Sequence record: PQ898399.1
Length of the DNA: 64,000 bases
Strand: one strand, 5' to 3'
Positions 4,720-50,866 of this stretch are shown in pieces; position 1 is the first letter of the stretch; every line of letters begins with the position of its first letter. Below the pieces are notes generated by a model. That model was not told the DNA's origin and searched no databases. It saw only the letters and a program-made list of their open reading frames with translations. Both the position numbers and the translations under genes were made by a program.

Positions 4720-4730
4720 GTGCATAGCAC
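4720..4730 (+). promoter_or_regulatory. GTGC-ATA-GCAC hairpin (weak promoter candidate or part of a longer stem 4711-4739)
   Basis: Same loop as other hairpins but predicted +1 is C. Confidence 0.35.
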
Positions 4731-5626: not shown

Positions 5627-5649
5627 GCCCTTCGGGGCTTATCTTTTTT
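5623..5649 (+). terminator. Intrinsic terminator
   Basis: TAAGCCC-TTCG-GGGCTTA then T-tract. Confidence 0.8.
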
Positions 5650-5669
5650 AATGCACTCCGTGCATTGTA
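5650..5669 (+). promoter_or_regulatory. vRNAP hairpin promoter with canonical loop (AATGCAC-TCC-GTGCATT; template C-GGA-G)
   Basis: 7-bp stem; template loop equals N4 P2-type GGA triloop; directly after terminator. Confidence 0.75.
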
Positions 5670-5695
5670 ATGAGTTCCTCAACTGGACTAAGCCT

Positions 5696-5887
5696 ATGGC
5701 TAACGAAATTGATGTAACAGCTAAGATAAACTTAGGTGAAGAACATAGTGTATTTGTCACTATACCTGCATCTGAACTTAAACGTCTTAAGACTTCCAAA
5801 CTTATTGGTAAAGACAGCACAGAGATAACTGTTATAGCTACTCTTGTTCCTGCTGTCTTCGATACAGAATTAGACCAATTATTTTGA
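5696..5887 (+). CDS. Small early protein with KT-LLG motif
   Basis: IPASELKRLKTSKLIG. Confidence 0.7.
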   Translation: MANEIDVTAKINLGEEHSVFVTIPASELKRLKTSKLIGKDSTEITVIATLVPAVFDTELDQLF

Positions 5888-5893
5888 GGCTAT

Positions 5894-6181
5894 ATGAAAG
5901 AAATAACCTACTGGGTAATTAGGCATATACCCACTAAACGTATCCTTGCTACTGCTGACAGCGTAGGCAAGGGCAGAGGTAATACTCGTGTTGATATTCA
6001 AGACACAGGTTTACCTCGACTGTTCGAAACAGAGAGACGAGCCAAGTATTGTCTCGCTCGCTGGCTTGAAGGTAAATTCCATATGACCTGGGATGATGGA
6101 ATTGAAGTTAGCACTCCAGCCATTCCTCGTATAAAGGAGGATATGGAAATCATACCTGTTCAACTTAAGGTGATGGTATGA
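5894..6181 (+). CDS. Early hypothetical protein (PRLF type)
   Basis: GAGG RBS; PRLFETERRAK. Confidence 0.7.
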   Translation: MKEITYWVIRHIPTKRILATADSVGKGRGNTRVDIQDTGLPRLFETERRAKYCLARWLEGKFHMTWDDGIEVSTPAIPRIKEDMEIIPVQLKVMV

Positions 6182-6480
6182 CAACTGTTAACTTATGCTA
6201 TCAGGCTGGTAAATACACTTTTATTGCTACGCTCGATGAGCAAGATATAGAAGGGTTAAAAACCAGAAGATTAATGGGTATGCACAAGCGTCAGGGAAGA
6301 TTACGTATGTTAATCATGGAGACTGACCGCATAGCGTTATACCCGAATGATCTTCATCGTATGTATACCATCCCAGAAACTGGTATGCGTATTCATCTCA
6401 ATGTACCTATTGCACCTGATGTAATGCACTGGGTATGTCCTACAACTGATGAGCTTAATGCTCTTATCTACTTCGAGTAA
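6178..6480 (+). CDS. Small early protein with KT-LLG motif
   Basis: LDEQDIEGLKTRRLMG. Confidence 0.7.
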   Translation: MTTVNLCYQAGKYTFIATLDEQDIEGLKTRRLMGMHKRQGRLRMLIMETDRIALYPNDLHRMYTIPETGMRIHLNVPIAPDVMHWVCPTTDELNALIYFE

Positions 6481-6486
6481 ATAACT

Positions 6487-6660
6487 ATGGTTGATATCGA
6501 ATATAAACTCATTAGGAATGAGAATAAGCAATCGCGTTATCCTTGGGTAGTTATCAAAAGTTATCCCGGATTCTTCCAGTATTTCTACTGTTCTGACAAA
6601 CAGAAGAAAGATTTCCCTAACCTGGCTGACCTATACAAAGAGGCTCGTAAAAATGGCTAA
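6487..6660 (+). CDS. 57-aa hypothetical protein
   Basis: MVDIEYKLIRNE...; fills gap between neighbours. Confidence 0.55.
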   Translation: MVDIEYKLIRNENKQSRYPWVVIKSYPGFFQYFYCSDKQKKDFPNLADLYKEARKNG

Positions 6661-6937
6661 ACGTAGACTACGTGCATACAATGCTACAGCGTTATATGTT
6701 CATATAACACCAGAGCTACTAAAGAGTCTGAAGGTTAAGCTCATGGTACTAAAGGTTCCATGTGTGGAACTGAAATTACCTACATTCAGAAACCAGCAGA
6801 AGAAATCAACCAAGCAAATCAAGGTTGGTGATGGTCTGTGGATCGAAGCTCAGCTTATGTATCCTGACCTCTGTAAAGCTGGTTCCTATCTGGAAGCCTA
6901 CTGGCGTTTCAATCTGACCCGGAGGATACCCTTCTAA
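6653..6937 (+). CDS. Small early protein with degenerate KT-LLG motif
   Basis: ITPELLKSLKVKLMVL; GAGG RBS. Confidence 0.7.
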   Translation: MAKRRLRAYNATALYVHITPELLKSLKVKLMVLKVPCVELKLPTFRNQQKKSTKQIKVGDGLWIEAQLMYPDLCKAGSYLEAYWRFNLTRRIPF

Positions 6938-7020
6938 AACTAAGGTTTGGGGTAAATCTTATACTGAAGTGTTTATGGATGAATTCTATAAATTAAACAA
7001 AGTAATCAAGGTAAACCGTA

Positions 7021-7341
7021 ATGATAATAATCCGTGATGTAATTCGCTATCACCCATCAGGTACTAAGTTAATAGCTGAAGCTAAAGTAACTGAAGAAGA
7101 GTTCAATAAGATCAGAACTCTATTCCTGATTGGTAATAAAGAACCAGTGCAACTGGTTACCTCTGTGTATTGGTATGAGGGTGGTTATCCACCTAAGCCA
7201 GTATATCTGGTGTGTCCTCAAGATTGGCGTGGTCAATTGCTCAATCCTGATACTGCTGCTTATGAAGCAAATACCAAAGAGAAACGTATGTGGCTCTTTG
7301 AATATAAACCAGTAAAGGATAGTGGGGGTGCTGCTATATGA
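7021..7341 (+). CDS. Small early protein with KT-LLG motif
   Basis: VTEEEFNKIRTLFLIG. Confidence 0.7.
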   Translation: MIIIRDVIRYHPSGTKLIAEAKVTEEEFNKIRTLFLIGNKEPVQLVTSVYWYEGGYPPKPVYLVCPQDWRGQLLNPDTAAYEANTKEKRMWLFEYKPVKDSGGAAI

Positions 7342-7628
7342 GAGTTGGTAATGGTTCACAAGCAACACCGCGTAGATACTTTTGTAAGCTCAGTGAAACT
7401 GAACTTAAGAAACTAGCTACCAAAGCGTTACTTAAATCCAGAACTTCAACTAATGAGTTCTATATGTCGTTCACCGTAAAAGTACCAACCTGGTACTCAA
7501 GAGGTAGAACGGAAAATAATGTATTCGAAATAAATGGTAAACGTGCAGTTGCTATTTATCTGGATACTAACGATTACTCAACTAAACCAGGAGTGTTAGC
7601 AGAATGGATAATCAGGATATATCACTGA
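7338..7628 (+). CDS. Small early protein with degenerate KT-LLG motif
   Basis: LSETELKKLATKALLK. Confidence 0.65.
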   Translation: MRVGNGSQATPRRYFCKLSETELKKLATKALLKSRTSTNEFYMSFTVKVPTWYSRGRTENNVFEINGKRAVAIYLDTNDYSTKPGVLAEWIIRIYH

Positions 7629-7951
7629 CTGATGGTGGTACAGAAATACTTCGTTGGGATGCTGAAAGAAACACATTTGATAAAATTGGTTATCTTACCC
7701 CGGGAGTGATGGAAAATCTTAAAACTCGTGTGATGCTTACACCGAATTTCACATGGACAGGTGATATCATTATTGATATCCGCATGTTCGAATTGGGGCC
7801 GGGTAGACTCGTCGGAGAGATTATGCTCCGTGTAGGTATACCTGGTATCAAGTGTAAAACTATCATGCTCAGTGTCCGTTTAACCAAGCAAATGCTTCAG
7901 GGTAAGTATCCCTATGTTAAAACGGAGGCAACAATCAAAGGTATTAGCTAA
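7604..7951 (+). CDS. Small early protein with degenerate KT-LLG motif
   Basis: LTPGVMENLKTRVMLT; AGGAG RBS. Confidence 0.7.
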   Translation: MDNQDISLTDGGTEILRWDAERNTFDKIGYLTPGVMENLKTRVMLTPNFTWTGDIIIDIRMFELGPGRLVGEIMLRVGIPGIKCKTIMLSVRLTKQMLQGKYPYVKTEATIKGIS

Positions 7952-8214
7952 TGGCTATAATCGAACGTAAGCGTAAAGATACAGCTTACTCCATCGAGTT
8001 CGATGATTCTGTTATCACTAATGATAACGGTACTGTATTCGGAGATATAACTATATATCGTTGGAATCGTAAGGATTTCTCTGATGGCTATATAAGAGGT
8101 ACACATCAGTTTAGATTTAGTATCCCACCCGGAGAACTAAATAAAATAAAAACTAAACTGCTATTAGGTATACATCCTACCTTTCGTATCGTTCTAAATT
8201 ACCAAGTTTGGTAA
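7951..8214 (+). CDS. Small early protein with KT-LLG motif
   Basis: IPPGELNKIKTKLLLG. Confidence 0.7.
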   Translation: MAIIERKRKDTAYSIEFDDSVITNDNGTVFGDITIYRWNRKDFSDGYIRGTHQFRFSIPPGELNKIKTKLLLGIHPTFRIVLNYQVW

Positions 8215-8233
8215 ACGTGCATAGCACGTTCAA
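8214..8233 (+). promoter_or_regulatory. Candidate vRNAP hairpin promoter (AACGTGC-ATA-GCACGTT, predicted +1 A8233)
   Basis: 7-bp stem, 3-nt loop, R(+1)-TG. Confidence 0.7.
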
Positions 8234-8295
8234 TGACTAATAATACTCTGGTTTCAGGGCTGCTGAAGCCAGGGTTCAACTCTAAGGATTGTTGT

Positions 8296-8577
8296 ATGCC
8301 AACTATGAATATCGATCATGCTCAGACTAATCTGCGCTGGTGTAAGCGTGCGTGGATGGATGGAGAAATGCGTGATCTGGCATTGTTCCTGTTCCATAAA
8401 GGTATGTCTCAGTTAATTATGTCCGACCTGGCTTTAGAGACTCAGGTTGAAGTCGCTGCCTCTATTCTGGGGCGTGAAGCATTTGAAGACCTCTCTGCGT
8501 TCAGTGAAGAGGTCAACGGCAGTCCTCTGCAATATGCTGCATGGCGTGACCGTGTTAGCTGCTTAATCATCTGTTAG
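8296..8577 (+). CDS. Early hypothetical protein between two hairpin promoters
   Basis: AAGGA RBS before ATG 8296. Confidence 0.7.
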   Translation: MPTMNIDHAQTNLRWCKRAWMDGEMRDLALFLFHKGMSQLIMSDLALETQVEVAASILGREAFEDLSAFSEEVNGSPLQYAAWRDRVSCLIIC

Positions 8578-8578
8578 A

Positions 8579-8598
8579 AACGCGCATAGCGCGTTATG
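8579..8598 (+). promoter_or_regulatory. Candidate vRNAP hairpin promoter (AACGCGC-ATA-GCGCGTT, predicted +1 G8598)
   Basis: 7-bp stem, 3-nt loop, R(+1)-TG; upstream of gp2-like gene. Confidence 0.7.
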
Positions 8599-8667
8599 TG
8601 CAATTAAGGGCATGTTAAGCCCACATTCTGTTATTAATCATCTACTCATCTTTAAGAGGTATATATC

Positions 8668-8952
8668 ATGGCTTTCACTCGCACTCCTGCTGCAAACAAC
8701 GCTCCTGCTGACAATGCTGCTAAGAACAAAGTTGGCGGCTATCTGAACATCAACATTCTGACCCGTGACGGTTCCCGTAAACGTCTGGGCGGCTCTGGTA
8801 TTGCTCTGCGTGAAAACCACCCGGTTGAAGGCGCGATTCTGGCTCTGATTCGTTCAAATCCAGAGAAGCTGCAAGACCTGGTTGGCCGTATTGAGCTGAC
8901 CTTTGGCGAAGCTCACAAAGAAGGCGAATTCGTCGATCTGGGCATCGAATAA
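8668..8952 (+). CDS. N4 gp2-like ssDNA-binding activator of RNAPII
   Basis: GYLNINILTRDGSRKRLG...IALRE pattern recalled from gp2 homologs; strong GAGG RBS; position upstream of RNAPII genes. Confidence 0.65.
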   Translation: MAFTRTPAANNAPADNAAKNKVGGYLNINILTRDGSRKRLGGSGIALRENHPVEGAILALIRSNPEKLQDLVGRIELTFGEAHKEGEFVDLGIE

Positions 8953-8959
8953 ACCAATT

Positions 8960-8985
8960 AAGCCAACCTTCGGGTTGGCTTTTTT
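8960..8985 (+). terminator. Intrinsic terminator
   Basis: AAGCCAACC-TTCG-GGTTGGCTT-TTTT. Confidence 0.85.
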
Positions 8986-8997
8986 ATTGAGGTATGT

Positions 8998-9162
8998 ATG
9001 GAAAAGATCTCTGTAACACCGACCAAATGGGCAGTAGTCGTAGGCTACGTTGAATACCACGCCGGTCGTCAATTTCCGTGGATGGGGCGTCATGGTTGTT
9101 CATTCAGCTTCTTCGCTACCGAGGATGAAGCCACTCAGTTCGCTATCACAGGTGTCCTGTAA
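8998..9162 (+). CDS. 54-aa hypothetical protein
   Basis: GAGGT RBS; TAATG coupling to next gene. Confidence 0.6.
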   Translation: MEKISVTPTKWAVVVGYVEYHAGRQFPWMGRHGCSFSFFATEDEATQFAITGVL

Positions 9163-9527
9163 TGGCTAAAGACTGGGGTGATCGCTGGGGCGATGAAGCA
9201 TTAGAGCGTGGCTCTAAAAGATTCCAACGTAAGGTATTAAGCGTATGGGATGAGAACGGTAATTTCATCCCGAAGGAGAAAAGAAATCCTATGTATATCA
9301 GTGATGGTACTCGTGCAATAAAGATCACTCAGGAGCTTTTAGACAAGCTCAAAACCCGTGTGCTAATTGGCAACATGGGTAAGTTCAAAGTCTCAAACCA
9401 GAGCATGTATTACACGGCTCAGTTACCAAAAGATCACTATGTGGATTCTATCAATATCAGCGGTAAGGTATTGAAAGCTAAAGCAGTTATGCCATTCCGT
9501 GGCGTATGGGAATTCCGTGTAGTTTAA
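9162..9527 (+). CDS. Small protein with KT-LLG motif
   Basis: ITQELLDKLKTRVLIG. Confidence 0.7.
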   Translation: MAKDWGDRWGDEALERGSKRFQRKVLSVWDENGNFIPKEKRNPMYISDGTRAIKITQELLDKLKTRVLIGNMGKFKVSNQSMYYTAQLPKDHYVDSINISGKVLKAKAVMPFRGVWEFRVV

Positions 9528-9545
9528 ACCAGTAAGGAGAATGTA

Positions 9546-10526
9546 ATGCACCGTTGGCTCGCTAAGGAAGAATTGCAACTTATCAATGAACGTCAGTTCA
9601 ACCGTAAGCATATTGATGGCTATATCCGTGCAGAACTCTTCGAAGGCCAGGAGAACCTCTGGCCTGAAGTAGCACAGGGCGTAGAGCTATTGAATCAATG
9701 GATGGATCAGCAGTTCTATGACAGCAAAGCTGTCCGTATCAGTCACTTAAGACAACTGGACTTAGAGAAGCTGGTTGTCGAGATATTCGTAGGCGTGTGC
9801 TACGTACAGGAGGAAACACCACTGGTCAACGTCATTGGTCAACTGGCTTCACGTATCGGCTTTGACGATAAGCGTGACAGCATTCAGACCATTGCCGAAG
9901 TGCTGGCTGTGCTGTGTGAAACTGATGTTTATGACATCAGCAAACCACACCCTAAAGCCAGTCTGTATATCAAATCTAACATCACCTTTGATGAGAGATT
10001 AAGCAATTTCATTGCATACTCATGCTATTTACCACCACTGGTTTGTGAACCTCGTGAACTGGTAAATAACCGTTCAACCGCCTATTACACGCATGAATCA
10101 GATAGCCTGATTCTGGGTGGAGGATTTAACCATCATGACGGAAACATCTGCCTTGATGTACTTAATTCACGCAATCGTGTTCCTCTCTCCCTGGACGTGC
10201 AATTCCTTTGCACAGTGGAGGAAGAACCAACTCACGATCTCGATGTTATTGACTCTGACGAGGATCTCAGTGACTGGCAGATAGCCGATATGGTACGCAA
10301 ACAGAAGCAAAACTGGGCGCGTTACAAAGAGCAGTCGTATTACTTCTATAGCCTGATGGTAAACCAGGGTAACAGGTTCTACATCAGCAACAAGGTAGAC
10401 AAACGTGGGCGCATGTACGCCTGTGGCTACCACATCACCCCACAGGGAACCAGCTTCAAGAAAGCGATGATTAACTTTGCCGATCAAGAGCAAGTAACAG
10501 GTGTCCCTGCGCAATTCAGAAAATGA
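9546..10526 (+). CDS. RNA polymerase II subunit 1 (N4 gp15-like, RNAP1)
   Basis: T7-family motif VDKRGRMY; YLPPLVCEP; adjacent to RNAP2. Confidence 0.92.
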   Translation: MHRWLAKEELQLINERQFNRKHIDGYIRAELFEGQENLWPEVAQGVELLNQWMDQQFYDSKAVRISHLRQLDLEKLVVEIFVGVCYVQEETPLVNVIGQLASRIGFDDKRDSIQTIAEVLAVLCETDVYDISKPHPKASLYIKSNITFDERLSNFIAYSCYLPPLVCEPRELVNNRSTAYYTHESDSLILGGGFNHHDGNICLDVLNSRNRVPLSLDVQFLCTVEEEPTHDLDVIDSDEDLSDWQIADMVRKQKQNWARYKEQSYYFYSLMVNQGNRFYISNKVDKRGRMYACGYHITPQGTSFKKAMINFADQEQVTGVPAQFRK

Positions 10527-10538
10527 GAGGAATAACTT

Positions 10539-11813
10539 ATGCAACATACTATCAATTTCGGTACTGGCTTCCAGAGATTCTCCGGCTGGGAATATCTCTG
10601 CATTGACGTAGCCAACCATTATGGGCTGGATAAAGAACTGTTCAACACCCGCATTCAGTGGGTGTATGACCACATCGATAACCTGGAAACATTGGCAGAT
10701 GATGCCGATGAACCAGTGCTGTTCAAGAAAGCTGTTATGACCCTTCGCCGTGCTCAGCACGGTGAGGCTGTAGGCCACGTAGTTCACTTCGATGCCTGCT
10801 GCTCCGGTATCCAGATTATGTCTGCACTTACTGGCTGTGAAGCTGGTGCGTACAACACTGGTATGGTTGACCCAAATCAGCGTATGGATGCCTACAGCAA
10901 CACCACTGGCGAGATGAACAAGATCCTGCAAACCAAAGGGTTAGCAAGTATCACGGTTCCTCGTGGTGACGTTAAACAAGCCGTAATGACTTCAGGCTAT
11001 GGCTCTAAAGCTGTGCCTAAGAAGGTATTCGGTGAAGGTGAAATGCTGGACGTGTTCTACGATGCAGCTATGACCATCGCTCCGGGCGCATTCAAGCTCA
11101 TGGATGAGCTTCTGGAATCATGGCGTCCATTTGCCCTGGAACACCGTCTGGTGGCTCCTGATGGCTTCACAGCCGTCATCAAGGTAATGGAAACCAAGGA
11201 AACCAGAATTGAAGTGGACGAACTCGACCATGCAACGTTTACGCTGCAATATCGTGTGAACGAGGGTACAGAGCGTGGACGTGCTAACGTAGCAAATACC
11301 ATCCACTTCTGTGATGCGTATCTCCTGCGTGGTATTGAGCGTCGTTGCAACTACGATCCAGTGGTTGTACGTAATGCTCAGGAAGTCCTGCGTATGGCTG
11401 CTCTGGGCTATTCCTGCGGTAATACTCAGATGGCCTGCACTGATGAACTCAGTGAACTGCTGCCACTGTGCATTCGCTCTCACATCGCTGATGTGGCGCT
11501 CCTGCCGTTGCTGCGTTGGGATAACGTGATGTGTCTGCCTAAGTGGATGGTGCATAAGCTGCTGTCTATCGTTAACGATATGCTGTCTTACAAGCCATTC
11601 CCTATCCTGACTGTCCATGATGCCTTTGGTGCTCATGCCAATAACTGTGACCTCACTCGTTACTGGTACAAAGAAATCATGGCTGATATGGCTGATTCTA
11701 ACCTGCTGGAAATGCTGATGTGTCAGCTTTACCAAATCACTGATGGTAAGTACGAGAAGCTGTCACCTAATCTGGGCGACAAAATTCGTAACTCCAATTA
11801 CGCATTAAGTTGA
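10539..11813 (+). CDS. RNA polymerase II subunit 2 (N4 gp16-like, RNAP2)
   Basis: Motif A HFDACCSGIQI, motif B RGDVKQAVMTSGYG, motif C VHDAF. Confidence 0.95.
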   Translation: MQHTINFGTGFQRFSGWEYLCIDVANHYGLDKELFNTRIQWVYDHIDNLETLADDADEPVLFKKAVMTLRRAQHGEAVGHVVHFDACCSGIQIMSALTGCEAGAYNTGMVDPNQRMDAYSNTTGEMNKILQTKGLASITVPRGDVKQAVMTSGYGSKAVPKKVFGEGEMLDVFYDAAMTIAPGAFKLMDELLESWRPFALEHRLVAPDGFTAVIKVMETKETRIEVDELDHATFTLQYRVNEGTERGRANVANTIHFCDAYLLRGIERRCNYDPVVVRNAQEVLRMAALGYSCGNTQMACTDELSELLPLCIRSHIADVALLPLLRWDNVMCLPKWMVHKLLSIVNDMLSYKPFPILTVHDAFGAHANNCDLTRYWYKEIMADMADSNLLEMLMCQLYQITDGKYEKLSPNLGDKIRNSNYALS

Positions 11814-11820
11814 GGAAATT

Positions 11821-11985
11821 ATGGTATTAACTGATCAAATGGAAGCGGTTATGAATCGCTTTGAAGCTGCTGTTCGTGCGCATGAGATGGTAGGAGCGCA
11901 AGATCCTGAAGATCGCCCAGGGATTGAAGACGAGTACCAGGAAGCCAAAGCAGAACTTGCTGAATGCTTATCCTGGGTTCCATAA
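11821..11985 (+). CDS. 54-aa acidic hypothetical protein
   Basis: GAGG RBS; MVLTDQMEAV... Confidence 0.65.
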   Translation: MVLTDQMEAVMNRFEAAVRAHEMVGAQDPEDRPGIEDEYQEAKAELAECLSWVP

Positions 11986-11990
11986 CCACC

Positions 11991-12014
11991 AGCCACCCTT
12001 CGGGGTGGCTTTTT
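11991..12014 (+). terminator. Intrinsic terminator
   Basis: AGCCACCC-TTCG-GGGTGGCT-TTTT. Confidence 0.85.
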
Positions 12015-12028
12015 CATTTGGAGATCCT

Positions 12029-12283
12029 ATGAAACTATTGCACTCGCTGCCTTACACAAAGGACGGAGTAGTCCATCCGGTAGGCAGAATGACTGTACCT
12101 AAATCACTGGTTTCAACTATGAAAGCCAGTCTGTTATCAGGTATGCCGGAGGTTGAACTTAGGCTTACGCCTGACGTGATTAAAACTGAAGGTATGCCTG
12201 TTCACCTACCTACGCTGGGCGTAGTCGGTGTAGCTGTCTACGCTGATGGTGATGACCGGGTAGTGAAACTCTACCGGGAGTAG
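12029..12283 (+). CDS. Small protein with degenerate KT-LLG motif
   Basis: VPKSLVSTMKASLLSG; GGAG RBS. Confidence 0.7.
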   Translation: MKLLHSLPYTKDGVVHPVGRMTVPKSLVSTMKASLLSGMPEVELRLTPDVIKTEGMPVHLPTLGVVGVAVYADGDDRVVKLYRE

Positions 12284-12285
12284 GT

Positions 12286-12534
12286 ATGAAAGCTAATTTA
12301 AGGTATGGGGGGCATCAAGCCACTACACATATTCAATATATTTACACAACACCTGAAATTATAAACCAGTTTAAAACCAAGAAGTTACTGGGATTAAAGT
12401 CAATCCTAATAAAGGCTACGCCTACTGAAGAAGCAACTTCAATGTTGGATCTCAAAGCCGAGGGTATTATAGAAATAGCTCATTTTTATGATGCTATCAC
12501 TAACTCAATGATGCTTCGCTTAAAACTTAAGTGA
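12286..12534 (+). CDS. Small protein with KT-LLG motif
   Basis: TTPEIINQFKTKKLLG. Confidence 0.7.
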   Translation: MKANLRYGGHQATTHIQYIYTTPEIINQFKTKKLLGLKSILIKATPTEEATSMLDLKAEGIIEIAHFYDAITNSMMLRLKLK

Positions 12535-12552
12535 CGCACTCCGTGCGTTGAG
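12534..12552 (+). promoter_or_regulatory. vRNAP hairpin promoter with canonical loop (ACGCAC-TCC-GTGCGT, predicted +1 G12552)
   Basis: 6-bp stem, template loop GGA, R(+1)-TGAG. Confidence 0.7.
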
Positions 12553-12634
12553 TGAGTTGACGCTTGCGCGTCTGTATAACTTAATTTTCTCTTTTCTGAA
12601 GGGCTATCCTACTCATTGGGATAGCCTATTTTTT
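12552..12634 (+). ncRNA. Candidate ~83-nt small RNA or primer transcript
   Basis: Hairpin promoter followed by terminator with no ORF between; 5' stem GACGC-TTGC-GCGTC and U/C-rich linker. Confidence 0.35.
12602..12634 (+). terminator. Intrinsic terminator
   Basis: GGCTATCC-9 nt-GGATAGCC-TATTTTTT. Confidence 0.75.
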
Positions 12635-12778
12635 ATACTTCAGAGACTTCTAAGACAGTCATGTACATAGTTCTAGAACTTCTATAGAAGTTTTATACCT
12701 ATATGCTAGACAGTCAAAAATCGACACTTTTGGCTATACCCACCCTAAACCCTAAATCCACTTATCTATAGGCTAAAA

Positions 12779-13015
12779 ATGAACGCAATAACCTTCATTG
12801 CTATGGTCGGTGCTGTCTGGTTCGGACTCGGCTGGACACTCGGATCTGGTGCGATTAAACACACCAAATTATTGCTCAAACAGGCTACTCACCCCATAGA
12901 ACTCATTGGGCTAAACTTACGAATTAAGCAGATTACACAGGCCAGGAAGGTTCTTCTTGTCCGGTGCATCATCTGTTTAATCGTTGCTGTATTGGCTCAT
13001 CTGATCGTGAGGTAG
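12779..13015 (+). CDS. Hypothetical membrane protein
   Basis: Two hydrophobic segments. Confidence 0.7.
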   Translation: MNAITFIAMVGAVWFGLGWTLGSGAIKHTKLLLKQATHPIELIGLNLRIKQITQARKVLLVRCIICLIVAVLAHLIVR

Positions 13016-13017
13016 CA

Positions 13018-13245
13018 ATGGACTACAAAATCTTTACTTACGTATTAGCTGTGCTGGCTTTCCTCTGCTTCCTGAATGCAGCGGATTACTGGGAAGACTA
13101 TCGCCGTTACTACTGGCAATTCACTTCCCAGGCTCAAGCCAGATATGGAAGACACATCCGTCGTAACGCGGTGCTCTGTGTGCTGTGGGGTGTCTTCTGG
13201 GCAGCTATTGCAATCATTTGCTGGTTTATCCCACAAGGAGCTTAA
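13018..13245 (+). CDS. Hypothetical membrane protein
   Basis: GAGGT RBS; two hydrophobic segments. Confidence 0.7.
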   Translation: MDYKIFTYVLAVLAFLCFLNAADYWEDYRRYYWQFTSQAQARYGRHIRRNAVLCVLWGVFWAAIAIICWFIPQGA

Positions 13246-13246
13246 G

Positions 13247-13861
13247 ATGCACCATTTTGATAAAGCAACCGAAGACGCAGTATTAAATGCGTTGAAACGC
13301 TATTCAGAATACCAGGTAGCCCGTATGTATGGCTTACGGGTGGCCTCGGTACGCCTGATTCGTCAAACAGCGTTAGAACGTCAGTGCAACCGTACTGCTA
13401 CCCTCCGGCAGCAGGAAAGCCCATTACAAATGGGTTTACGTCTGCATGAAGACCTCTATGGTAGATCTTCGCGTACAGCAGAAGTACCAACCACTTACGA
13501 TCAATGGCGTGATATTGCCTTTGGTAAACAGGATTCAGTTACTGTGCCAAAGCAAGATTACGCTGGTTTAGAAGGTCGTGTGATGGCTGGCTTCTTCACC
13601 CCTAACGGCTTGCCTACGCCAGCCTTCTGGGGCTTTATAAGCCAGTATGTGAAGAAGTCCGGGCATACCATGCTGGACATTCTGCACGACAAAGAAATCT
13701 ATTCCCCAGAGCAACTCGAACGCGCTCTGGATATCGACTCTCAAATTCAAGACATGACGAAAGCTCAGCGTATTGCTCTGCTACGTCGTCTGACTAATGC
13801 GGTATATTCAGATGAATTCAAAGATCCAACCGATTCCGGCTCCGATGTTCAGGACAGCTAA
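13247..13861 (+). CDS. Hypothetical protein with possible N-terminal HTH
   Basis: AGGAG RBS; SEYQVARMYGLRVASVRLIR. Confidence 0.65.
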   Translation: MHHFDKATEDAVLNALKRYSEYQVARMYGLRVASVRLIRQTALERQCNRTATLRQQESPLQMGLRLHEDLYGRSSRTAEVPTTYDQWRDIAFGKQDSVTVPKQDYAGLEGRVMAGFFTPNGLPTPAFWGFISQYVKKSGHTMLDILHDKEIYSPEQLERALDIDSQIQDMTKAQRIALLRRLTNAVYSDEFKDPTDSGSDVQDS

Positions 13862-14042
13862 TAACCTCAATGAGGCTATGTTCGAAATCAAACAGCATAC
13901 GTATCCGTATGATCCCAACACTATTCACTCGCTGGTAATGATGTACCACAACACGTTGCTTAAAGAACTTGAGCAACAAGGTCGTCTATTACCTGCGCCC
14001 CCTGAACCAGATCAAAACCAGTTGTCTTTAAAACTGGATTAA
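13797..14042 (+). CDS. Small protein ending in a clamp-binding-like motif (start uncertain)
   Basis: PIPAPMFRT...; C-terminus PAPPEPDQNQLSLKLD. Confidence 0.6.
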   Translation: MRYIQMNSKIQPIPAPMFRTANNLNEAMFEIKQHTYPYDPNTIHSLVMMYHNTLLKELEQQGRLLPAPPEPDQNQLSLKLD

Positions 14043-14335
14043 TGCCCTCCGGGCATTCTGCGACTGGTGATCCCACTTCGGAAATCCAGAGGAATGCTAT
14101 GGAACATGTAATTGAACATCCCCACAGGAACGCAACTAAGACAGTCACTATTGAGCCTTTAAAGCTCAAACTTGGCTTGGCATATCGTATCAAGATCACT
14201 ATTCAGAATTACTCTGGGCAAGCCAGTATGTATTCGGAAAAAGATATTGAATTGATGCTCTTTGAGGAAGAACTGGACGGGCTTATTACTGCCCTCAATA
14301 AAGCTAAAATGGCTAAGTTATTAGGGATTAAGTAA
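14042..14335 (+). CDS. Hypothetical protein with C-terminal KT-LLG-like motif
   Basis: Ends GLITALNKAKMAKLLGIK. Confidence 0.6.
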   Translation: MPSGHSATGDPTSEIQRNAMEHVIEHPHRNATKTVTIEPLKLKLGLAYRIKITIQNYSGQASMYSEKDIELMLFEEELDGLITALNKAKMAKLLGIK

Positions 14336-14700
14336 TGCCACCCAGTAAAAACCATCCCCATCCTGATCGTCGTCAGGAGATCTGCAATCGCATCATGAAT
14401 CGTGTAGATATCCGTGACTGCGGTTATCGAGTTAATGGTGTTGTATCCCCATGCCACGTATGGACTGGCCCCACTTCGGGCGAAGGACGAGGCGGAGGCT
14501 ATGGGCGTATCAGCATCAACTCTCAAACGTGTGCCACTCACATTGTGATGGCTACTCATTATTTTGGTTATATCCCCGGCAATAAACAGGTAGACCACAA
14601 GTGTCGTAATCGCTTGTGCTGTAACCCTGAACATCTCGAACTGGTAAGCCAGAAAGAGAATTGCCGTCGTCGTGATAAAGCTCTGAAGGAGGCTTCATGA
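14335..14700 (+). CDS. HNH endonuclease (N4 gp22-like)
   Basis: CHVWTG...GYGRI...VDHKCRNRLCCNPEHLELVSQKEN. Confidence 0.85.
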   Translation: MPPSKNHPHPDRRQEICNRIMNRVDIRDCGYRVNGVVSPCHVWTGPTSGEGRGGGYGRISINSQTCATHIVMATHYFGYIPGNKQVDHKCRNRLCCNPEHLELVSQKENCRRRDKALKEAS

Positions 14701-15023
14701 CAGGCGAAGATTATGACGAGCAGTTTAAACGTGAAGTCCTGCCTGACTGGGCTGAACGTTACGATCCCTCTGGGACTCTGGAATTGCACCGTCAGCTATG
14801 CACAAAAGATGGTCGTCGAATGGGTAATGCTTTCATTACCAAAATCGGAACCACAATGAGCATTGCCGATTTCAAACCAGAACCTTGCTATACGGTACTA
14901 ACCGATGCGGGTTCTCAGGTACGAATGATCGAAAGTGAAATTCGTGATGCTTTTTATATTGGTGAGTATATCGCCAAATCCCACACAATTCCTGGTTTAA
15001 GGAACCTGCCTAAGTATGAATAA
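14697..15023 (+). CDS. Hypothetical protein
   Basis: GGAGG RBS; DGRRMGNAFI pattern. Confidence 0.7.
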   Translation: MTGEDYDEQFKREVLPDWAERYDPSGTLELHRQLCTKDGRRMGNAFITKIGTTMSIADFKPEPCYTVLTDAGSQVRMIESEIRDAFYIGEYIAKSHTIPGLRNLPKYE

Positions 15024-15219
15024 GTACCTCAAACTCTACCTGTACGCAGTAATCATATTACTCGTGTCAGGTGTGTTATACGGTGGCTTGCTGCCGTCAA
15101 TGGTATCGGCTAACGATACTATCCTCGTGTTCATCGGCATTGCCGGTGCTCTGGTGTGGCCTGCTCTGGTAGCCACTTTCGTCTATCGTCAATTTAAGAA
15201 GAAATTTAAAAATGCGTAA
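15016..15219 (+). CDS. Two-TM membrane protein upstream of SPFH gene
   Basis: Two hydrophobic helices, basic C-terminus. Confidence 0.7.
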   Translation: MNKYLKLYLYAVIILLVSGVLYGGLLPSMVSANDTILVFIGIAGALVWPALVATFVYRQFKKKFKNA

Positions 15220-16048
15220 ACTCATCATGGGCTGCATTCTGGCAGTCGTTGCAATGACCTCGTTGACCGGCTGCTATGATCGTGTCGAACCAGGTAACGT
15301 AGGTATCATCGTCAACCGTCTGGGCGACGATAAAGGCGTTGACCAACAGGTCAAAGGCGTTGGCCGTTACTGGATCGGCTGGAACGAAGATCTGTATACG
15401 TTCCCGACGTTCAAGCAGATGAAGACCTACGACGAAAAGTTTTACTTCCAACTGTCGGACGGTACTCAGATCGGCCACCAACTGGCTATCAGCTATAAGG
15501 TCAATCCGACCAAAGTAGCGACTATCTTCCAGACCTACCGTAAAGGTGTCGATGAAATCACTGACCAGGATCTGCGTCAGCGTATTGCCGATATCCTGAA
15601 CCGTCAGGGCAACCTGATTAACACTGACAAGTTTATTGACGGTGGTAAGTCTCGTCTGCTGGATAGCGTAGCCGATGCAGTTAAAAAAGAGATGGAGCCG
15701 GTCGGTATCGACATTATGGCCATCTCCTGGGTAGGTGCCCCGGAATACCCGGACAACGTGAAGCGTGCAATTAACGCGAAGGTTGAAGCCACCCAGAAAA
15801 CTCTGCAACGCGAGCAGGAAGTGCAACAGCGTATTGCTGAAGCAAACATGGCTCGTGAGCAAGCCAAAGGTGAAGCTGACGCCGTGGTACTGAAAGCAAA
15901 AGCAGAAGCTGATGCCATCAAACTGCGTGGTGATGCACTGCGTGAAAACCCTGGTGTAATGGAACTGGAAGCAATCAACAAGTGGAATGGTGTATTGCCT
16001 ACCACCATGATCCCAGGTGCCTCTACACCGTTTGTACCTGTTAAATAA
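15212..16048 (+). CDS. SPFH/band-7 (prohibitin-like) lipoprotein
   Basis: Lipobox LTGC; RVEPGNVGIIVN; Ala/Glu coiled coil; LEAINKWNGVLP. Confidence 0.9.
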   Translation: MRKLIMGCILAVVAMTSLTGCYDRVEPGNVGIIVNRLGDDKGVDQQVKGVGRYWIGWNEDLYTFPTFKQMKTYDEKFYFQLSDGTQIGHQLAISYKVNPTKVATIFQTYRKGVDEITDQDLRQRIADILNRQGNLINTDKFIDGGKSRLLDSVADAVKKEMEPVGIDIMAISWVGAPEYPDNVKRAINAKVEATQKTLQREQEVQQRIAEANMAREQAKGEADAVVLKAKAEADAIKLRGDALRENPGVMELEAINKWNGVLPTTMIPGASTPFVPVK

Positions 16049-16125
16049 TCCCACTGGTGCTTTCCTTAACCTGGCTTAAATCAAGCCAGGTTTATGAATA
16101 TCATCCCAATTTCTAAGGAATAAAT

Positions 16126-16881
16126 ATGATCCTCCCAGAACAAGAAGAAGTTGCTGGCGTATTAGGCCGTGTCTTCGATGCGTATACTCGTTCCCGTGGT
16201 GTAATCCGTCCTCACTTCATTTTGTCTGGTGAATCAGGATCGGGTAAGTCACATCTCATTAAAACGTTAGCCAAAGAGCGTGATATCGAGGTACTCGAAG
16301 TCAATGCTGCTGGCTTAACTAAAGAAGGCGTATCCGGTAACTCATTATCGAAAGCCTTAACTCCCCTGCGTAACATGAACGCTACAGGTGGCATCGTTAT
16401 CTTCGTAGATGAGTTCGACAAGCTGTTCACCAACGGTGTAGGCGGAGATACTCATGAAGCCCTTGCTGGTGTCCAGAATGAATTTCTGACCATGTTGGAA
16501 AGCGATACAGCCAGCGTATTTGGCGACTACGGTAAATATGAAAAGGTTAATGTAGGGCAGACGCTATTCGTGTTTGCCGGAGCATTCAATGGTGAGGCTA
16601 ACCTTACCCATGAACGGATGCGTGAAATGGGTGTACGTACAGAATTTCTGGGGCGTGTAGCTCTGCACTTCAGCACTACTCGCCCATCACTTCAATCACT
16701 CCTGGATCTCGTCCCAGAGAACATTCTTCTGATGGAATATCTGAAAGCCTTCAGTAAGCAAAACCAGAAGAAGAAGATCATCAACGAAATTCAGGCTCAG
16801 ATTAAGATGGCCTACAAGAAGAATGCCATTGGTGTTCGTATCGTAAGTCAACTCGTTCACCAATATTTCCTACAGGTATAG
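16126..16881 (+). CDS. Minimal ClpX/HslU-like AAA+ ATPase
   Basis: GESGSGKS, IFVDEFDK, GVQNEFL, FAGAF, EFLGR. Confidence 0.8.
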   Translation: MILPEQEEVAGVLGRVFDAYTRSRGVIRPHFILSGESGSGKSHLIKTLAKERDIEVLEVNAAGLTKEGVSGNSLSKALTPLRNMNATGGIVIFVDEFDKLFTNGVGGDTHEALAGVQNEFLTMLESDTASVFGDYGKYEKVNVGQTLFVFAGAFNGEANLTHERMREMGVRTEFLGRVALHFSTTRPSLQSLLDLVPENILLMEYLKAFSKQNQKKKIINEIQAQIKMAYKKNAIGVRIVSQLVHQYFLQV

Positions 16882-16883
16882 CT

Positions 16884-17087
16884 ATGAGTGACTTTGTAAA
16901 AAATCCTGACTGGAAAACCATCCTATTAATGGGGTTCATCTTAGGCTTCATTGCTATGGGTATATTGTCTTATATGTCTGTAACAAAAGAAGTAAAGGCT
17001 AAGAAAACTGAGTGTGAACTTAATATTCCCAGGAACCAAAAATGTGTAATGCAATTTGTTCCTGAAATCAAACAAACCAGAGGTTAA
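16884..17087 (+). CDS. Small membrane protein
   Basis: One TM segment; CELNIPRNQKC tail. Confidence 0.7.
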   Translation: MSDFVKNPDWKTILLMGFILGFIAMGILSYMSVTKEVKAKKTECELNIPRNQKCVMQFVPEIKQTRG

Positions 17088-17089
17088 AA

Positions 17090-18124
17090 ATGGCTGTCGA
17101 AACCCTTATCGCTGATGTAATCCCATTCGTTAAACGTGTTATCACCAAACGTTTGGTTCCAATGATCCACGGTAGCCCGGCTATCGGTAAATCCGATATC
17201 GTCAAGCAGATTGCTGCTGAAGCAAAACTGTGGGTAATTGATATCCGTCTGTCCATGTATGACCCGGCTGACCTTAACGGTCTGCCATTCCGTACAGAAA
17301 AGAACGGGCGTCAACTGGCAGAGTATCTACCGTTCGGTGTATTCCCAACTGAAGACACCCCGATCCCGGAAGGCTATAAAGGCTGGCTCATCTTCATGGA
17401 TGAACTGCCATCAGCAGTCCCTGCTGTTCAGGCGGCTGCTTTTAAACTAATCCTGGATCGTGAAGTAGGTCAGCACAAGCTGCACCCAATGGCCTTCATG
17501 GTTGCCGCAGGTAACACTGAAGACGATGGTGCGATTGTTAACCCGCTGCCGACTCCATTGCAGTCACGTATGATCAACTTCAAGGTTAAACCAGAACTGA
17601 AATCGTTCCTGGCTTACGCTCTGAAGCACGGTCTGGACTATCGAATCGCTGCGTTCCTCGAATTTAAACCGGAGTATCTGTATAAGTTCGATCCGAACCA
17701 CGATGACCTGACGTATTCCTCACCACGTACTTTGATGTTCCTGTCAAAGTTGATTAACGGTGAGACTGTCACTCGTGATGATCTGCCCCTGGTTGCTGGT
17801 ACTATCGGCCAGGCTGCTGCAAATGAGTTCATCAGCTTTGTTAAGCTATATGACGAAATCGCTAAGATTTCCGATATCGTTGCCAACCCTCTGACAGCGA
17901 AATGCCCGACCAACAACCCATCCCTGTGCTTTGCAATGGCTGGTTCATTGTCTCAGCACGCAACCAAAAAGAATCTGCCTGCGTTCATTCAGTACGCTGA
18001 ACGAATGGATATGGAATACCAGATCATTACCCTGCGTCAAATCCTCGGTCGTCACCCTGACCTCATGGACGAAGAGTGCATGGAAGAATGGATTAATAAA
18101 TATTCTTCCGAAATCTGGAACTAA
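17090..18124 (+). CDS. MoxR-like AAA+ ATPase (N4 gp24-like)
   Basis: GSPAIGKS, IFMDEL, AAGN, LQSR. Confidence 0.9.
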   Translation: MAVETLIADVIPFVKRVITKRLVPMIHGSPAIGKSDIVKQIAAEAKLWVIDIRLSMYDPADLNGLPFRTEKNGRQLAEYLPFGVFPTEDTPIPEGYKGWLIFMDELPSAVPAVQAAAFKLILDREVGQHKLHPMAFMVAAGNTEDDGAIVNPLPTPLQSRMINFKVKPELKSFLAYALKHGLDYRIAAFLEFKPEYLYKFDPNHDDLTYSSPRTLMFLSKLINGETVTRDDLPLVAGTIGQAAANEFISFVKLYDEIAKISDIVANPLTAKCPTNNPSLCFAMAGSLSQHATKKNLPAFIQYAERMDMEYQIITLRQILGRHPDLMDEECMEEWINKYSSEIWN

Positions 18125-18128
18125 ACCC

Positions 18129-18150
18129 TGGGGCTTCGGCCCCACTTTTT
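18129..18150 (+). terminator. Intrinsic terminator
   Basis: TGGGGC-TTCG-GCCCCA-CTTTTT. Confidence 0.75.
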
Positions 18151-18163
18151 AACTGGAGTATTC

Positions 18164-18694
18164 ATGCAATACAGCAAACTGCCTTGCGAATTAAAAGAAC
18201 TGGTTCGCCATATGATTAGTGTGTATATGAGCACTAATGATGGCCTGATCTCCCGTAGCGACGTTACCAACATCCTGGATGCTGTGAGCGTACTGGCTGA
18301 ACCTTCTGTATCCGGTTCTGTCGGGGAAATGAAAGTTGACCCAGCTAAACCAGAAAGCGAAGAAACTGCGTATCAATACACAACGCCAGAGATCCCTGAA
18401 GAGGGTAAATTCTCTGATGATGCTATCGATGCCCTGCTGTTCGCTCTGTTCGGTGCTGGCCTGACTCAGGCTGCTGAGTCGGTTGTTGACCGGGTAGAAA
18501 CTGCTAAGCCTCGCTGGAAAGTTACTGCCACCTCTGGTGACATTACTCTCTGGGTAAATGTTGATCAGCCGCAGAAATACATTGCCGTAGGGCGTGGTAA
18601 GAAGCTCGGCTTCGAACTGCCACAAGGCAATGATCTGCCACCAGCAGAACTGGTAGCCCACATGCTGGACATGTTTGGCGAAAACGTAGCGTAA
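18164..18694 (+). CDS. Hypothetical protein
   Basis: GGAG RBS. Confidence 0.75.
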   Translation: MQYSKLPCELKELVRHMISVYMSTNDGLISRSDVTNILDAVSVLAEPSVSGSVGEMKVDPAKPESEETAYQYTTPEIPEEGKFSDDAIDALLFALFGAGLTQAAESVVDRVETAKPRWKVTATSGDITLWVNVDQPQKYIAVGRGKKLGFELPQGNDLPPAELVAHMLDMFGENVA

Positions 18695-18708
18695 GAAAGG
18701 AAACCAGT

Positions 18709-19290
18709 ATGTTTACTAAACAGCCGTGGCTTAACCCTCAAGGGTTAATACCCACCGAACAGAAGTATCAGGAAATGTACGAGCAATCGTGGCTATCCCA
18801 GTTTGAAAAGGCAGAAACAGTTCACATACTGGTTCCTTCAGCATTCTATAAGGATGCAAAGGTGATTGCCGACAACCTGACAGAACCTAACGAATTCCGT
18901 AATGATGTTCGAGTAGGTGATGACCTTTATTTCCTGACTCGCAGTATAAAGCCATCTCGTCCTAACGTGTCTACAGAGCTATGTAAAGGGTTAATACCCC
19001 ACGCTACAGCTTTGTATAAAAACCAGAAGATGCAACGTGATGTAATCACTATTACCTGGTTTTACTGGGATTGGGCTTCAGCTATTCATAGTCTGTTGAC
19101 TAACTACACAGAAATTAAATTACCGGATTCTATGTTACCTGAGTATATGGCTACAGCCTGTGGCCTTAACTGGAAAGATCAGGTGGCCTATATCCGTAAA
19201 CTTAAAACCATTCAGTTATTAAAAGGTAACTCTGATGGATTTCCAAAAACTACTGTCGAAAGCCCGCATTGGACTCCTGGCAAAAGATGA
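18709..19290 (+). CDS. Hypothetical protein with near-C-terminal KT-LLG-like motif
   Basis: DQVAYIRKLKTIQLLKG; overlaps next gene by 56 nt. Confidence 0.65.
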   Translation: MFTKQPWLNPQGLIPTEQKYQEMYEQSWLSQFEKAETVHILVPSAFYKDAKVIADNLTEPNEFRNDVRVGDDLYFLTRSIKPSRPNVSTELCKGLIPHATALYKNQKMQRDVITITWFYWDWASAIHSLLTNYTEIKLPDSMLPEYMATACGLNWKDQVAYIRKLKTIQLLKGNSDGFPKTTVESPHWTPGKR

Positions 19291-50852: not shown

Positions 50853-50866
50853 GGGGCTTCTTTATT
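50831..50866. terminator. Bidirectional terminator
   Basis: AAAT-AAGAAGCCCCC-TGAGTA-GGGGGCTTCTT-TATT. Confidence 0.8.

Follow-up and report, generated by a model that had tools for sequence, protein, structure and literature searches.

Ten small genes in the early and middle region of an Enterobacter phage share a motif of 16 residues and are probably, at roughly 60%, diverged paralogs of one family of small proteins (~60–120 aa) that has been expanded in tandem. The motif itself is most likely the one helix at the core of a small fold common to these proteins, as predicted structures suggest, and not a tag carried by unrelated proteins. The genes are arranged in tandem in a conserved order, and the family is narrowly distributed.

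The motif and the genes that carry it

The window, which is the whole stretch of 64,000 nt that was analysed, is 100% identical to vB_Ecl_SABI. Its source is the Cbunavirus-like, N4-like Enterobacter phage vB_Ecl_SABI/SonariX of the family Schitoviridae. The window contains a giant virion RNA polymerase gene (a 3623-aa ORF at 50865–61736), genes of a two-subunit RNAP II (9546–11813, named from the annotation of relatives and 75% identical to those of CB4), and hairpins resembling early promoters. The placement among schitoviruses, proposed in an earlier note on this DNA, is borne out by the comparison with relatives. All ten motif genes belong to the early/middle block and are located at 5696–9527 and 12029–12534. 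Three hairpins are candidate early promoters flanking the blocks of motif genes, as judged from their sequences. The N4-type hairpin at 4720–4730 (plus strand), with a short stem and an ATA loop, is positioned in the intergenic gap 5' of the 5696–8214 member block and has the same GCATAGC core as the three annotated early promoters of CB4. The second early-promoter-like hairpin is at 8214–8230. The hairpin at 8579–8595 (plus strand) has a 7-bp stem, corresponds in position to the third annotated CB4 promoter, and is upstream of a gp2-like gene of the ssDNA-binding cofactor type (8668–8952), the 9162 member, and the RNAP II genes.

The motif consists of a hydrophobic residue, T/S/P, three variable residues, a hydrophobic residue, two variable residues, a hydrophobic residue, K/R, T, two variable residues, L, a hydrophobic residue, and G. 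The earlier note had reported it in 10–12 small proteins. All 12 of the quoted 16-mers were located in plus-strand translations; the coordinates listed for them are those of the ORF start codons, and the motifs are further downstream. Ten copies stand, whereas the two described as weaker score at the level of noise (3.1 bits or HMM E > 4) and were rejected. The rejected 16-mers are at 14279–14326 in the ORF 14042/14099–14335 and at 19177–19227 in the ORF 18709–19290, both on the plus strand. Leave-one-out PSSMs score the quoted position highest in all ten strong copies; compared with 2000 shuffles, nine of these reach p ≤ 0.0005. The ten genes pass both the leave-one-out PSSM and an iterated HMM, and are members of what is defined here as the Cbunavirus early small-protein family. 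The second defining feature of this family is a motif close to the N-terminus of a 60–140-aa product of the plus-strand early/middle block, and this feature was found as well.

All ten members are encoded on the plus strand and are referred to by the first position of their genes. The 5696 gene (5696–5887, 63 aa, motif 5762–5809) is an annotated CDS within a longer ORF that begins at 5651; its leave-one-out score is 25.8 bits (p < 0.0005) and its iterated HMM E-value 1.7e-8. The 6178 gene (6178–6480, 100 aa, phrog_30060, motif 6232–6279) scores 11.6 bits (p = 0.0005), and its orthologs in CB4, Kc283, Arno152, and EK8 retain the motif. The 6653 gene (6653–6937, 94 aa, motif 6704–6751) and the 7021 gene (7021–7341, 106 aa, phrog_24685, motif 7087–7134) both score 18.1 bits; the latter is present in 20 phage records, every one of them Cbunavirus-like. 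The 7338 gene (7338–7628, 96 aa, phrog_35909, motif 7389–7436) scores 13.3 bits. It is followed by the 7604 gene (7604–7951, 115 aa, phrog_27457, motif 7694–7741; 16.6 bits), the orthologs of which retain an R-T-x-R-L-L core. The product of the 7951 gene (7951–8214, 87 aa, motif 8122–8169) has an N-terminal extension of ~55 aa and, with 34.4 bits, is the closest of the members to the family consensus. The 9162 member (9162–9527, 121 aa, phrog_35035, motif 9324–9371; 28.6 bits) also has an N-terminal extension, and its gene immediately precedes those of the two RNAP II subunits. The weakest of the ten is the 12029 gene (12029–12283, 84 aa, phrog_24414, motif 12095–12142), in which K-A replaces K-T. 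It scores 5.8 bits (p = 0.028) and has an iterated HMM E-value of 5e-9, and the motif of its orthologs is conserved at 0.81 identity. Orthologs of the 12286 gene (12286–12534, 82 aa, phrog_24879, motif 12346–12393; 21.0 bits) were found in every Cbunavirus locus examined.

Conservation of the motif at the protein level

It is very improbable that the copies are look-alikes that arose by chance or convergence in unrelated small proteins, from helix-capping grammar and amino acid composition. N-cap, hydrophobic-staple, and glycine-stop patterns are established helix-capping rules, and motif positions 1, 2, 6, 9, and 16 obey them. Segments resembling the motif are also present in the virion RNA polymerase and, as the helix that follows Walker A, in the helicase. 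In addition, the unrelated repeat protein P0030 matches the N-terminal half of the motif. However, ten proteins of the 83-gene proteome reach at least 12 bits, where shuffles predict 0.17. The matches in the helicase and the virion RNA polymerase are the only two in the ~17,000 residues of the core genes. An unbiased all-pairs scan of 16-mers in the 48 proteins of up to 150 aa produced 14 pairs above the 99.9th shuffle percentile, where 1.1 were expected, and ten of these 14 are motif pairs in register. Chance resemblance is further contradicted by the fixed position of the motif, the tandem gene order, the conservation in orthologs, and the intermediates linking subfamilies that are described below. 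An unguided MAFFT alignment brought the motif into register across all ten proteins.

The conservation of the motif acts on the protein, without an underlying DNA element. Information content is 0.64, 1.18, and 0.51 at codon positions 1, 2, and 3, respectively, in agreement with the claim that synonymous codon variation reflects selection on the protein. In most genes the start codon and the motif are separated by a similar distance, which would fit the coincidental translation of a promoter, recombination site, or RNA structure. The probability of such a DNA- or RNA-level element is nevertheless negligible: the third codon position is the least informative and the second the most, nucleotide identity averages 0.45 and is 0.40 at the third bases of codons for identical residues, and the 40–49 HMM matches are confined to the coding frame and coding strand of early regions.

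Of 57 distinct motif variants from all subfamilies, 98% have K or R at position 10, 86% have T at position 11, and 82% have L at position 14. The same three positions are the most conserved of the motif within subfamilies (0.76, 0.83, and 0.71).

Predicted fold and relatedness outside the motif

AlphaFold models of the 7021 protein (pLDDT 75, pTM 0.67) and the 7338 protein (pLDDT 76, pTM 0.66) are of medium confidence and were built from a mixed-paralog alignment, which may have biased them toward one fold. The predicted topology of the two is similar, with the order strand-helix-strands in a comparison of their DSSP strings. In the 7021 model, strands 2–10 and 16–23 precede the motif helix (25–36) and are followed by strands 43–52, 69–73, and 85–95, with a three-residue turn at 78–80. 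In the 7338 model, strand 13–16 and the motif helix (20–32) are followed by five strands. In both models the motif forms the sole substantial helix, is predicted with a pLDDT of 85–90, and has a strand on either side. The helix extends over motif positions 3–14/15 directly after a strand, which agrees with the description in the earlier note of an amphipathic helix that is N-capped and follows a short beta-strand-like run. A search of BFVD with the 7338 model identified Cbunavirus proteins of 15–26% sequence identity (TM 0.48–0.62, probability 0.99–1.0), one of which is probably a 6653-type Nepra protein, and no match beyond Cbunavirus proteins.

The earlier note regarded the proteins as otherwise unrelated, with the motif at different positions. 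However, the motif starts at residue 14–24 in ~75% of 76 members and at residue 10–35 in 84%, and metagenomic intermediates and the predicted structures contradict the lack of relationship for at least part of the family. The part of the metagenomic protein P0024 that follows the motif was aligned by hhalign with the 6653 subfamily (96%, E 1e-9) and, weakly, with the post-motif part of the 9162 subfamily (52%, E 1.5e-4). P0024 matches the 7338 subfamily at 77%, and the metagenomic protein P0023 does so at 98%. Through these intermediates, profile comparison shows full-length homology between at least the 6653 and 7338 subfamilies and, weakly, the 9162 subfamily. The full-length profile pairs 7021/7338, 7338/6178, and 7338/9162 reach 78–94%. 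After removal of the motif, 45 pairs of subfamily profiles are no more similar than controls. Therefore, the common ancestry of all ten members rests on the motif, its position, the gene order, and the predicted topology. Conservation within subfamilies is barely higher in the motif (0.61) than in the remainder of the proteins (0.55), which fits a structural element and not an isolated docking island.

The single helix within a compact predicted domain, its near-fixed position, and the conserved tandem array speak against the portable docking tag on unrelated proteins that had been proposed. Like AAA+ adaptor or degron tags and short linear docking motifs, the family has a short segment common to proteins that otherwise differ; however, its segment is a predicted core helix at a fixed position and not a peptide of a disordered tail. 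Assignment to such tags was rejected on the basis of the position, the partial full-length homology, and the status of the segment as the only substantial predicted helix.

A shared docking site, a narrower form of the idea in the earlier note, is a possible but less likely explanation. In it, the face of K/R10-T11-x-x-L14 would bind one partner from the host or phage in all members, however these descended, and the variable remainder would provide specificity. The conservation of positions 10, 11, and 14 across the motif variants and within subfamilies is in line with this arrangement, and at positions 10 and 11 it exceeds the needs of a generic helix. A calculated helical wheel places T11 on the polar face and positions 10, 11, and 14 on one side of the helix, adjoining the polar stripe of positions 3/4, 7/8, and 11/12. 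If the docking site exists, ten or more early proteins expressed together would engage one host or phage factor, and each of their diverged sheets would contribute its own activity or a second target. The proteins would then constitute a modular takeover system of one dock and many heads, produced by gene duplication from a fold without a solved relative. Against this stand the predicted integration of the helix into the fold, with strands immediately on both sides, and the conservation of the whole motif only marginally above that of the flanks. The earlier suggestion of an adaptor for a phage AAA+ machine does not agree with the distribution of the ClpX-like AAA+ gene (16126–16881 in the window), which does not co-occur with the family: it is present in 160 phage records, mostly without the family, and absent from CB4, which has 13 members.

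Descent from a common ancestor, the preferred explanation, would account for the features of the motif as follows. Each protein would be a compact alpha+beta domain of one or two strands, a single alpha-helix, and three to five antiparallel strands. The hydrophobic residue and the T/S/P at positions 1–2 would cap the helix, followed by an acidic first turn; the hydrophobic residues at positions 6, 9, and 13 would face the core; and the terminal L-hydrophobic-G would stop the helix ahead of the next strand. The helix may have remained alignable because it is a core element of the fold, whereas the strands and loops would have diverged past recognition in most pairs.

Two known folds are similar to this arrangement. 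Hot-dog proteins (thioesterase/dehydratase-like) share with the family the strand or strands, one helix, and an antiparallel sheet, but the likeness is topological only, the helix of the family is shorter, and no sequence relation was found. The best PDB matches of the 7021 model are the hot-dog proteins 1sh8, 3lmb, and 8ayv, which are not significant (E 0.24–1.3, TM 0.33; best match E 0.24, TM 0.34/0.25), and there is no hot-dog protein among the top PDB matches of the 7338 model. Membership in the hot-dog group was rejected, as neither model superimposed significantly. The AbrB/SpoVT-MazE swapped hairpin likewise belongs to small proteins and has a short strand, a helix, and another strand close to the N-terminus; however, the family has a longer helix, with three to five additional strands after it. 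It was rejected, with no Pfam match at E ≤ 1 and none among the Foldseek PDB matches.

Distribution and possible roles of the family

Cbunavirus genomes contain 5–10 copies by HMM, and 13 were counted by hand in CB4. Klebsiella Efbeekayvirus has 1–3 weak HMM matches, and the HMM search detected no member in the N4 species or Salmonella phage S5. A search of 1.84 billion protein representatives found only 16 clusters. The motif is kept in each of eleven orthologous subfamilies, and a metagenomic contig has the same gene order, with four members in a row. No relative was found in Pfam or the PDB, and none with an annotated function. Seven of the ten window proteins belong to the PHROGs families given above, all of "unknown function" and unconnected to each other, and three have no PHROG; PHROGs does not record the connection of the members through the shared helix, its position, the gene order, and the intermediates. 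Searches of Pfam, PHROGs, the PDB, and the literature turned up no description of the family, as the earlier note had surmised for the motif. The Cbunavirus literature terms these early genes hypothetical and lineage-specific.

It is possible, but improbable, that the proteins, again as paralogs, are small nucleic-acid-binding regulators of phage transcription or replication, with a basic helix that contacts DNA or RNA. The products of the 6653, 9162, and 7338 genes are strongly basic (net charges +12, +9, and +8), and the genes of the 9162 subfamily always immediately precede those of RNAP II, close to the gp2-like cofactor gene. However, the charge ranges from −4 to +12 and is not a property of the family, no DNA-binding family or fold was matched in sequence or structure searches, and the family is missing from N4, whose transcription scheme is the same.

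Clusters of small early "ORFan" genes for host takeover are known from N4-like and other lytic phages, such as N4 and LUZ7, and one N4 early gene inhibits the host clamp loader. The genes of such a cluster are usually described as unrelated to one another. The genes of the family resemble them in their location at the left genome end behind candidate hairpin early promoters, their small size, and the lack of homologs beyond close relatives. In contrast to these clusters, the ten genes described here, and thirteen in CB4, probably represent one paralogous family, of which N4 has no member.

Diverged paralogs could have arisen by repeated tandem duplication within the early/middle transcription block of N4-like phages of the Cbunavirus type. 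The proteins would be produced immediately after infection, and we infer a role of the family in host takeover. The variable surfaces of the sheets and loops may provide each paralog with a separate target in host takeover or counter-defence, and a further function, shared by all members, may come from the near-invariant K/R10-T11-L14 patch. The degree of conservation of K/R10 and T11 is not obviously demanded by a purely structural role.

A helix motif shared by ten small proteins

Ten small genes on the plus strand, at 5696-9527 and 12029-12534 (starting at 5696, 6178, 6653, 7021, 7338, 7604, 7951, 9162, 12029, and 12286), encode proteins that share a 16-residue segment predicted to be helical, the positions of which are numbered here 1-16. 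All twelve 16-mers quoted for this motif in the earlier note are present in plus-strand reading frames of the window; the numbers listed with them mark the start codons of the open reading frames, not the motif sites. Leave-one-out PSSMs returned the quoted site as the best one in each of the ten strong copies, at p <= 0.0005 in all but the 12029 gene (p = 0.028). Ten proteins of the 83-gene proteome reach 12 bits or more, versus 0.17 expected from shuffled proteomes. In an unbiased scan of proteins of up to 150 aa (1128 pairs), 14 pairs exceed the 99.9th percentile of shuffles versus 1.1 expected, and 10 of these 14 top pairs are in-register motif pairs. An unguided MAFFT alignment lined up the motif in all ten proteins. 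By these four independent tests the similarity is beyond chance, and the chance explanation is rejected, since the similarity exceeds that of shuffles in tests on the window proteins.

The count of 10-12 copies proposed earlier is reduced to ten, because the two "weaker" copies, at 14042/14099-14335 and 18709-19290, score at noise level and were dropped. A search of the window for additional members found none besides the ten. The annotated gene 18709-19290 overlaps by 56 bases with 19235-20392, an N4 gp25-like (vWA) gene according to synteny with phages CB4 and Kc283. The gene at 5894-6181, a non-member flanked by two members, encodes a protein that faintly resembles the 5696 protein (phmmer E 0.039) and has an N-terminal PSSM match of 3.6 bits; it may be a degenerate member.

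Equal frequency of the motif in core genes, which the earlier note had named as a refutation, is not observed: there are two motif-like segments in about 17,000 core residues versus ten in about 950. The two segments belong to large genes, those of the virion RNA polymerase and of a Dda-like helicase. The polymerase segment (50865-61736, minus strand, residues 451-466; 14.5 bits) is unsurprising in a protein of 3623 aa. The helicase segment (20410-21738, residues 46-61; 13.2 bits) is the helix directly after Walker A; it ends with K-T-R-x-L-L-G, and a strand comes next. CB4, Kc283, and EK8 conserve this segment, which is looser in Klebsiella phages. It is the only conserved core-gene look-alike and probably represents a generic strand-helix-strand unit.

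The motif is maintained at the protein level, as had been proposed. The information content at codon positions 1, 2, and 3 is 0.64, 1.18, and 0.51, which rules out a DNA-level repeat. Where residues are identical, the third base agrees in only 40% of cases, and among 1435 six-frame ORFs the HMM matches are confined to the coding frame and coding strand.

Core helix or docking site

Residue shares were calculated from 57 distinct motif variants. Position 1 is hydrophobic in 91%, position 2 is S, T, D, N, or P in 93% (T in 61%), and position 4 is acidic in 60%. Hydrophobic residues occupy positions 6, 9, and 15 in 100%, 96%, and 93% of the variants, respectively, and the remaining preferences are for K/R at position 10 (98%), T at 11 (86%), L at 14 (82%), and G at 16 (61%). 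According to established helix-capping rules, positions 1, 2, and 6 would act as hydrophobic staple and N-cap; the helix would be amphipathic, with positions 6, 9, and 13 as its buried stripe; and the glycine would stop the helix ahead of the next strand. K/R10, T11, and L14 are not explained by generic helix rules. A helical-wheel calculation places the three residues on one side of the helix, with T11 within the polar stripe. In comparisons within subfamilies, conservation is only slightly higher in the motif than elsewhere in the protein (0.61 versus 0.55, p 0.007), and the same three positions are the most conserved ones of the motif.

The conservation of K/R10, T11, and L14 beyond generic helix rules, on one helix side, favors a narrowed form of the docking idea, in which a single partner common to all members would bind at the K/R-T-x-x-L face. 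This is the main rival explanation and is considered rather unlikely. In its original form, a docking tag carried by otherwise unrelated proteins, the idea is not the best reading of the data, given the near-fixed position of the motif, its place as a core helix in the predicted structures, and links between flanks. In 76 members, the motif starts at residues 14-24 in about 75% and at residues 10-35 in 84%; genes that deviate from this, among them 7951 and 9162, have N-terminal extensions.

The 7338 and 7021 proteins were modeled with AlphaFold, both from a mixed-paralog alignment, with pLDDT values of 76 and 75 and pTM values of 0.66 and 0.67, respectively. Both models contain one or more strands, the motif helix, antiparallel strands, and finally a long C-terminal strand. 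The motif is the only substantial helix (motif positions 3-14/15, pLDDT 85-90). Searched against BFVD, the 7338 model matched Cbunavirus proteins only: one ortholog (TM 0.78) and four other proteins with 15-26% identity, TM 0.48-0.62, and probability 0.99-1.0. One of the low-identity matches most likely corresponds to the Nepra protein of the 6653 type, as judged from length and alignment score only. The PDB fold search gave no significant neighbor for either model. The best PDB matches of the 7021 model have a hot-dog fold but are non-significant (E 0.24, TM 0.33), and this fold was rejected for the family; an AbrB/MazE swapped hairpin found no support in Pfam and fold searches. Because the fold has no solved relative, structures of these proteins would be new.

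With the motif excised, similarity between subfamily profiles in 45 pairs does not exceed that of controls (hhalign, shallow profiles of 4-5 sequences), and the earlier impression of unrelated flanks is therefore understandable. It does not hold for the subfamilies linked by metagenomic intermediates, and only when these were included did flank homology surface. The post-motif part of the metagenomic protein P0024 matches the 6653 subfamily at 96% (E 1e-9), the 7338 subfamily at 77%, and the 9162 subfamily at 52%, and a second intermediate, P0023, matches the 7338 subfamily at 98%. Full-length profile comparison gives 78-94% for the pairs 7021/7338, 7338/6178, and 7338/9162. Beyond the 6653/7338/9162 core, shared ancestry of all ten members is indicated indirectly.

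The preferred reading, to which we assign a probability of roughly 60%, is that the ten genes are diverged tandem paralogs of a lineage-specific family and that their products have one small alpha+beta fold in common, with the motif as its core helix. The helix would have stayed alignable while the strands drifted. Such a paralogous early-gene family would be new; the shared binding face is a candidate possibility.

Distribution of the family

A family HMM iterated over the early regions of eight relatives found 40 proteins at E <= 0.005 and 49 matches at 0.05, the latter comprising 46 small proteins and three motif-like matches in helicase ORFs. The HMM detects 5-10 copies per Cbunavirus genome; by manual count, 13 of the first 29 genes of CB4 are members. 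In the two Klebsiella Efbeekayvirus phages, a single clear match each is accompanied by a few weak ones, and the early regions of Salmonella phage S5 and one N4-species phage have no HMM match. The motif is kept in each of eleven orthologous subfamilies. A tblastn search with the 7021 protein found 20 of 50,697 phage records, every one Cbunavirus-like, and in metagenomic contigs the tandem order is retained, with four members consecutive.

Searched exhaustively with HMMER, 1.84 billion representatives yielded only 16 clusters at E <= 0.001, all of them small phage-like proteins except for one unrelated repeat protein. This metagenomic protein, P0030 (276 aa), matches the family profile weakly (E 3e-4) and carries five repeat units in tandem, each about 55 aa long and opening with a helix resembling L-T-E-E-D-I-E-F-L-K-T-H-T. 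As its match shows, many helices may begin like the first half of the motif, which is a common start.

The family is undescribed, as the earlier note had held. The Pfam search returned nothing, the PDB sequence profile search gave no relative (nothing below E 0.9), and the family is described in no paper found. PHROGs assigns seven members to seven different families, all of "unknown function". A word-indexed search for homologs of the 12286 protein returned only this protein, and an alignment query returned close orthologs only. Papers on Cbunavirus list these genes as lineage-specific hypothetical early proteins and say no more of them. About a fifth of the early/middle genes of the phage would form one undescribed family where databases show unrelated orphans. 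Once the family is recognized, the block of "hypothetical proteins" becomes a single problem, in which solving one structure and one function would shed light on at least ten genes in each genome.

Genomic setting and possible roles

The nearest classified relatives of the phage are Cbunavirus members of the Schitoviridae: Pectobacterium phages CB1, CB4, Nepra, and Possum, Kosakonia phage Kc283, and Escherichia phage EK8. The window encodes the virion RNA polymerase and two RNAP II subunits (9546-11813), and contains intergenic hairpins with an ATA loop and a GCATAGC core at 4065-4077, 4720-4730, 8214-8230, and 8579-8595, the last two with 7-bp stems. The same core is found in annotated N4-type early promoters of CB4. 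Together, the polymerase genes and promoter-like hairpins place the family in an early/middle gene block. A fifth GCATAGC, at 6329, is intragenic and has an imperfect stem.

Since the genes lie behind early-promoter-like hairpins and their products are absent from the CB1 virion proteomics, the most likely role for the members is that of non-structural early proteins directed at host processes or defences. Variable surfaces may give the paralogs different specificities. Binding of nucleic acids is possible for the strongly basic members; however, it is not a family-wide property, as the net charge ranges from -4 to +12. The family would be a clear case of tandem gene-family expansion within a phage early region, a signature expected where a phage is in an arms race with the targets or defences of its host. 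Pending function, the practical gain is modest for now.

The earlier note had also suggested an adaptor role for a phage AAA+ machine. The window encodes a ClpX-like AAA+ protein of 251 aa (16126-16881; Pfam AAA/AAA_2). Its distribution makes it an unlikely partner: most of the 160 phage records that contain it lack the family, and it is missing from CB4, which has 13 members; co-distribution was not found, and the adaptor role was rejected. The ATPase is an accessory gene across many N4-like genera, present in only 3 of 14 Pectobacterium records, and adjoins a SPFH/Band 7 domain protein (15212-16048).

Other paralogs are present in the window. The proteins encoded at 4115-4432 and 5447-5626 form a second, smaller early pair that lacks the motif (phmmer E 3e-5; shared 16-mer score 41). 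The genes at 33366-34097 and 34164-34616 (minus strand) are clear paralogs (phmmer E 4e-46), and the N-terminus of the 34164 protein has a high-scoring 16-mer (score 41) in common with the early 2361-2645 (plus strand) protein.

In the 248,734-bp record "Enterobacter phage SonariX, partial genome", the window makes up the final 64,000 bases. Across bases 5600-12600 it matches Enterobacter phage vB_Ecl_SABI (76 kb) with 100% identity, and the same stretch also belongs to the end of the 248-kb SonariX record. Because of this identity over the 7-kb stretch compared, the SonariX record probably consists of several joined phage genomes or is a mis-assembly. The first base of the window falls within a minus-strand gene (1-1595).
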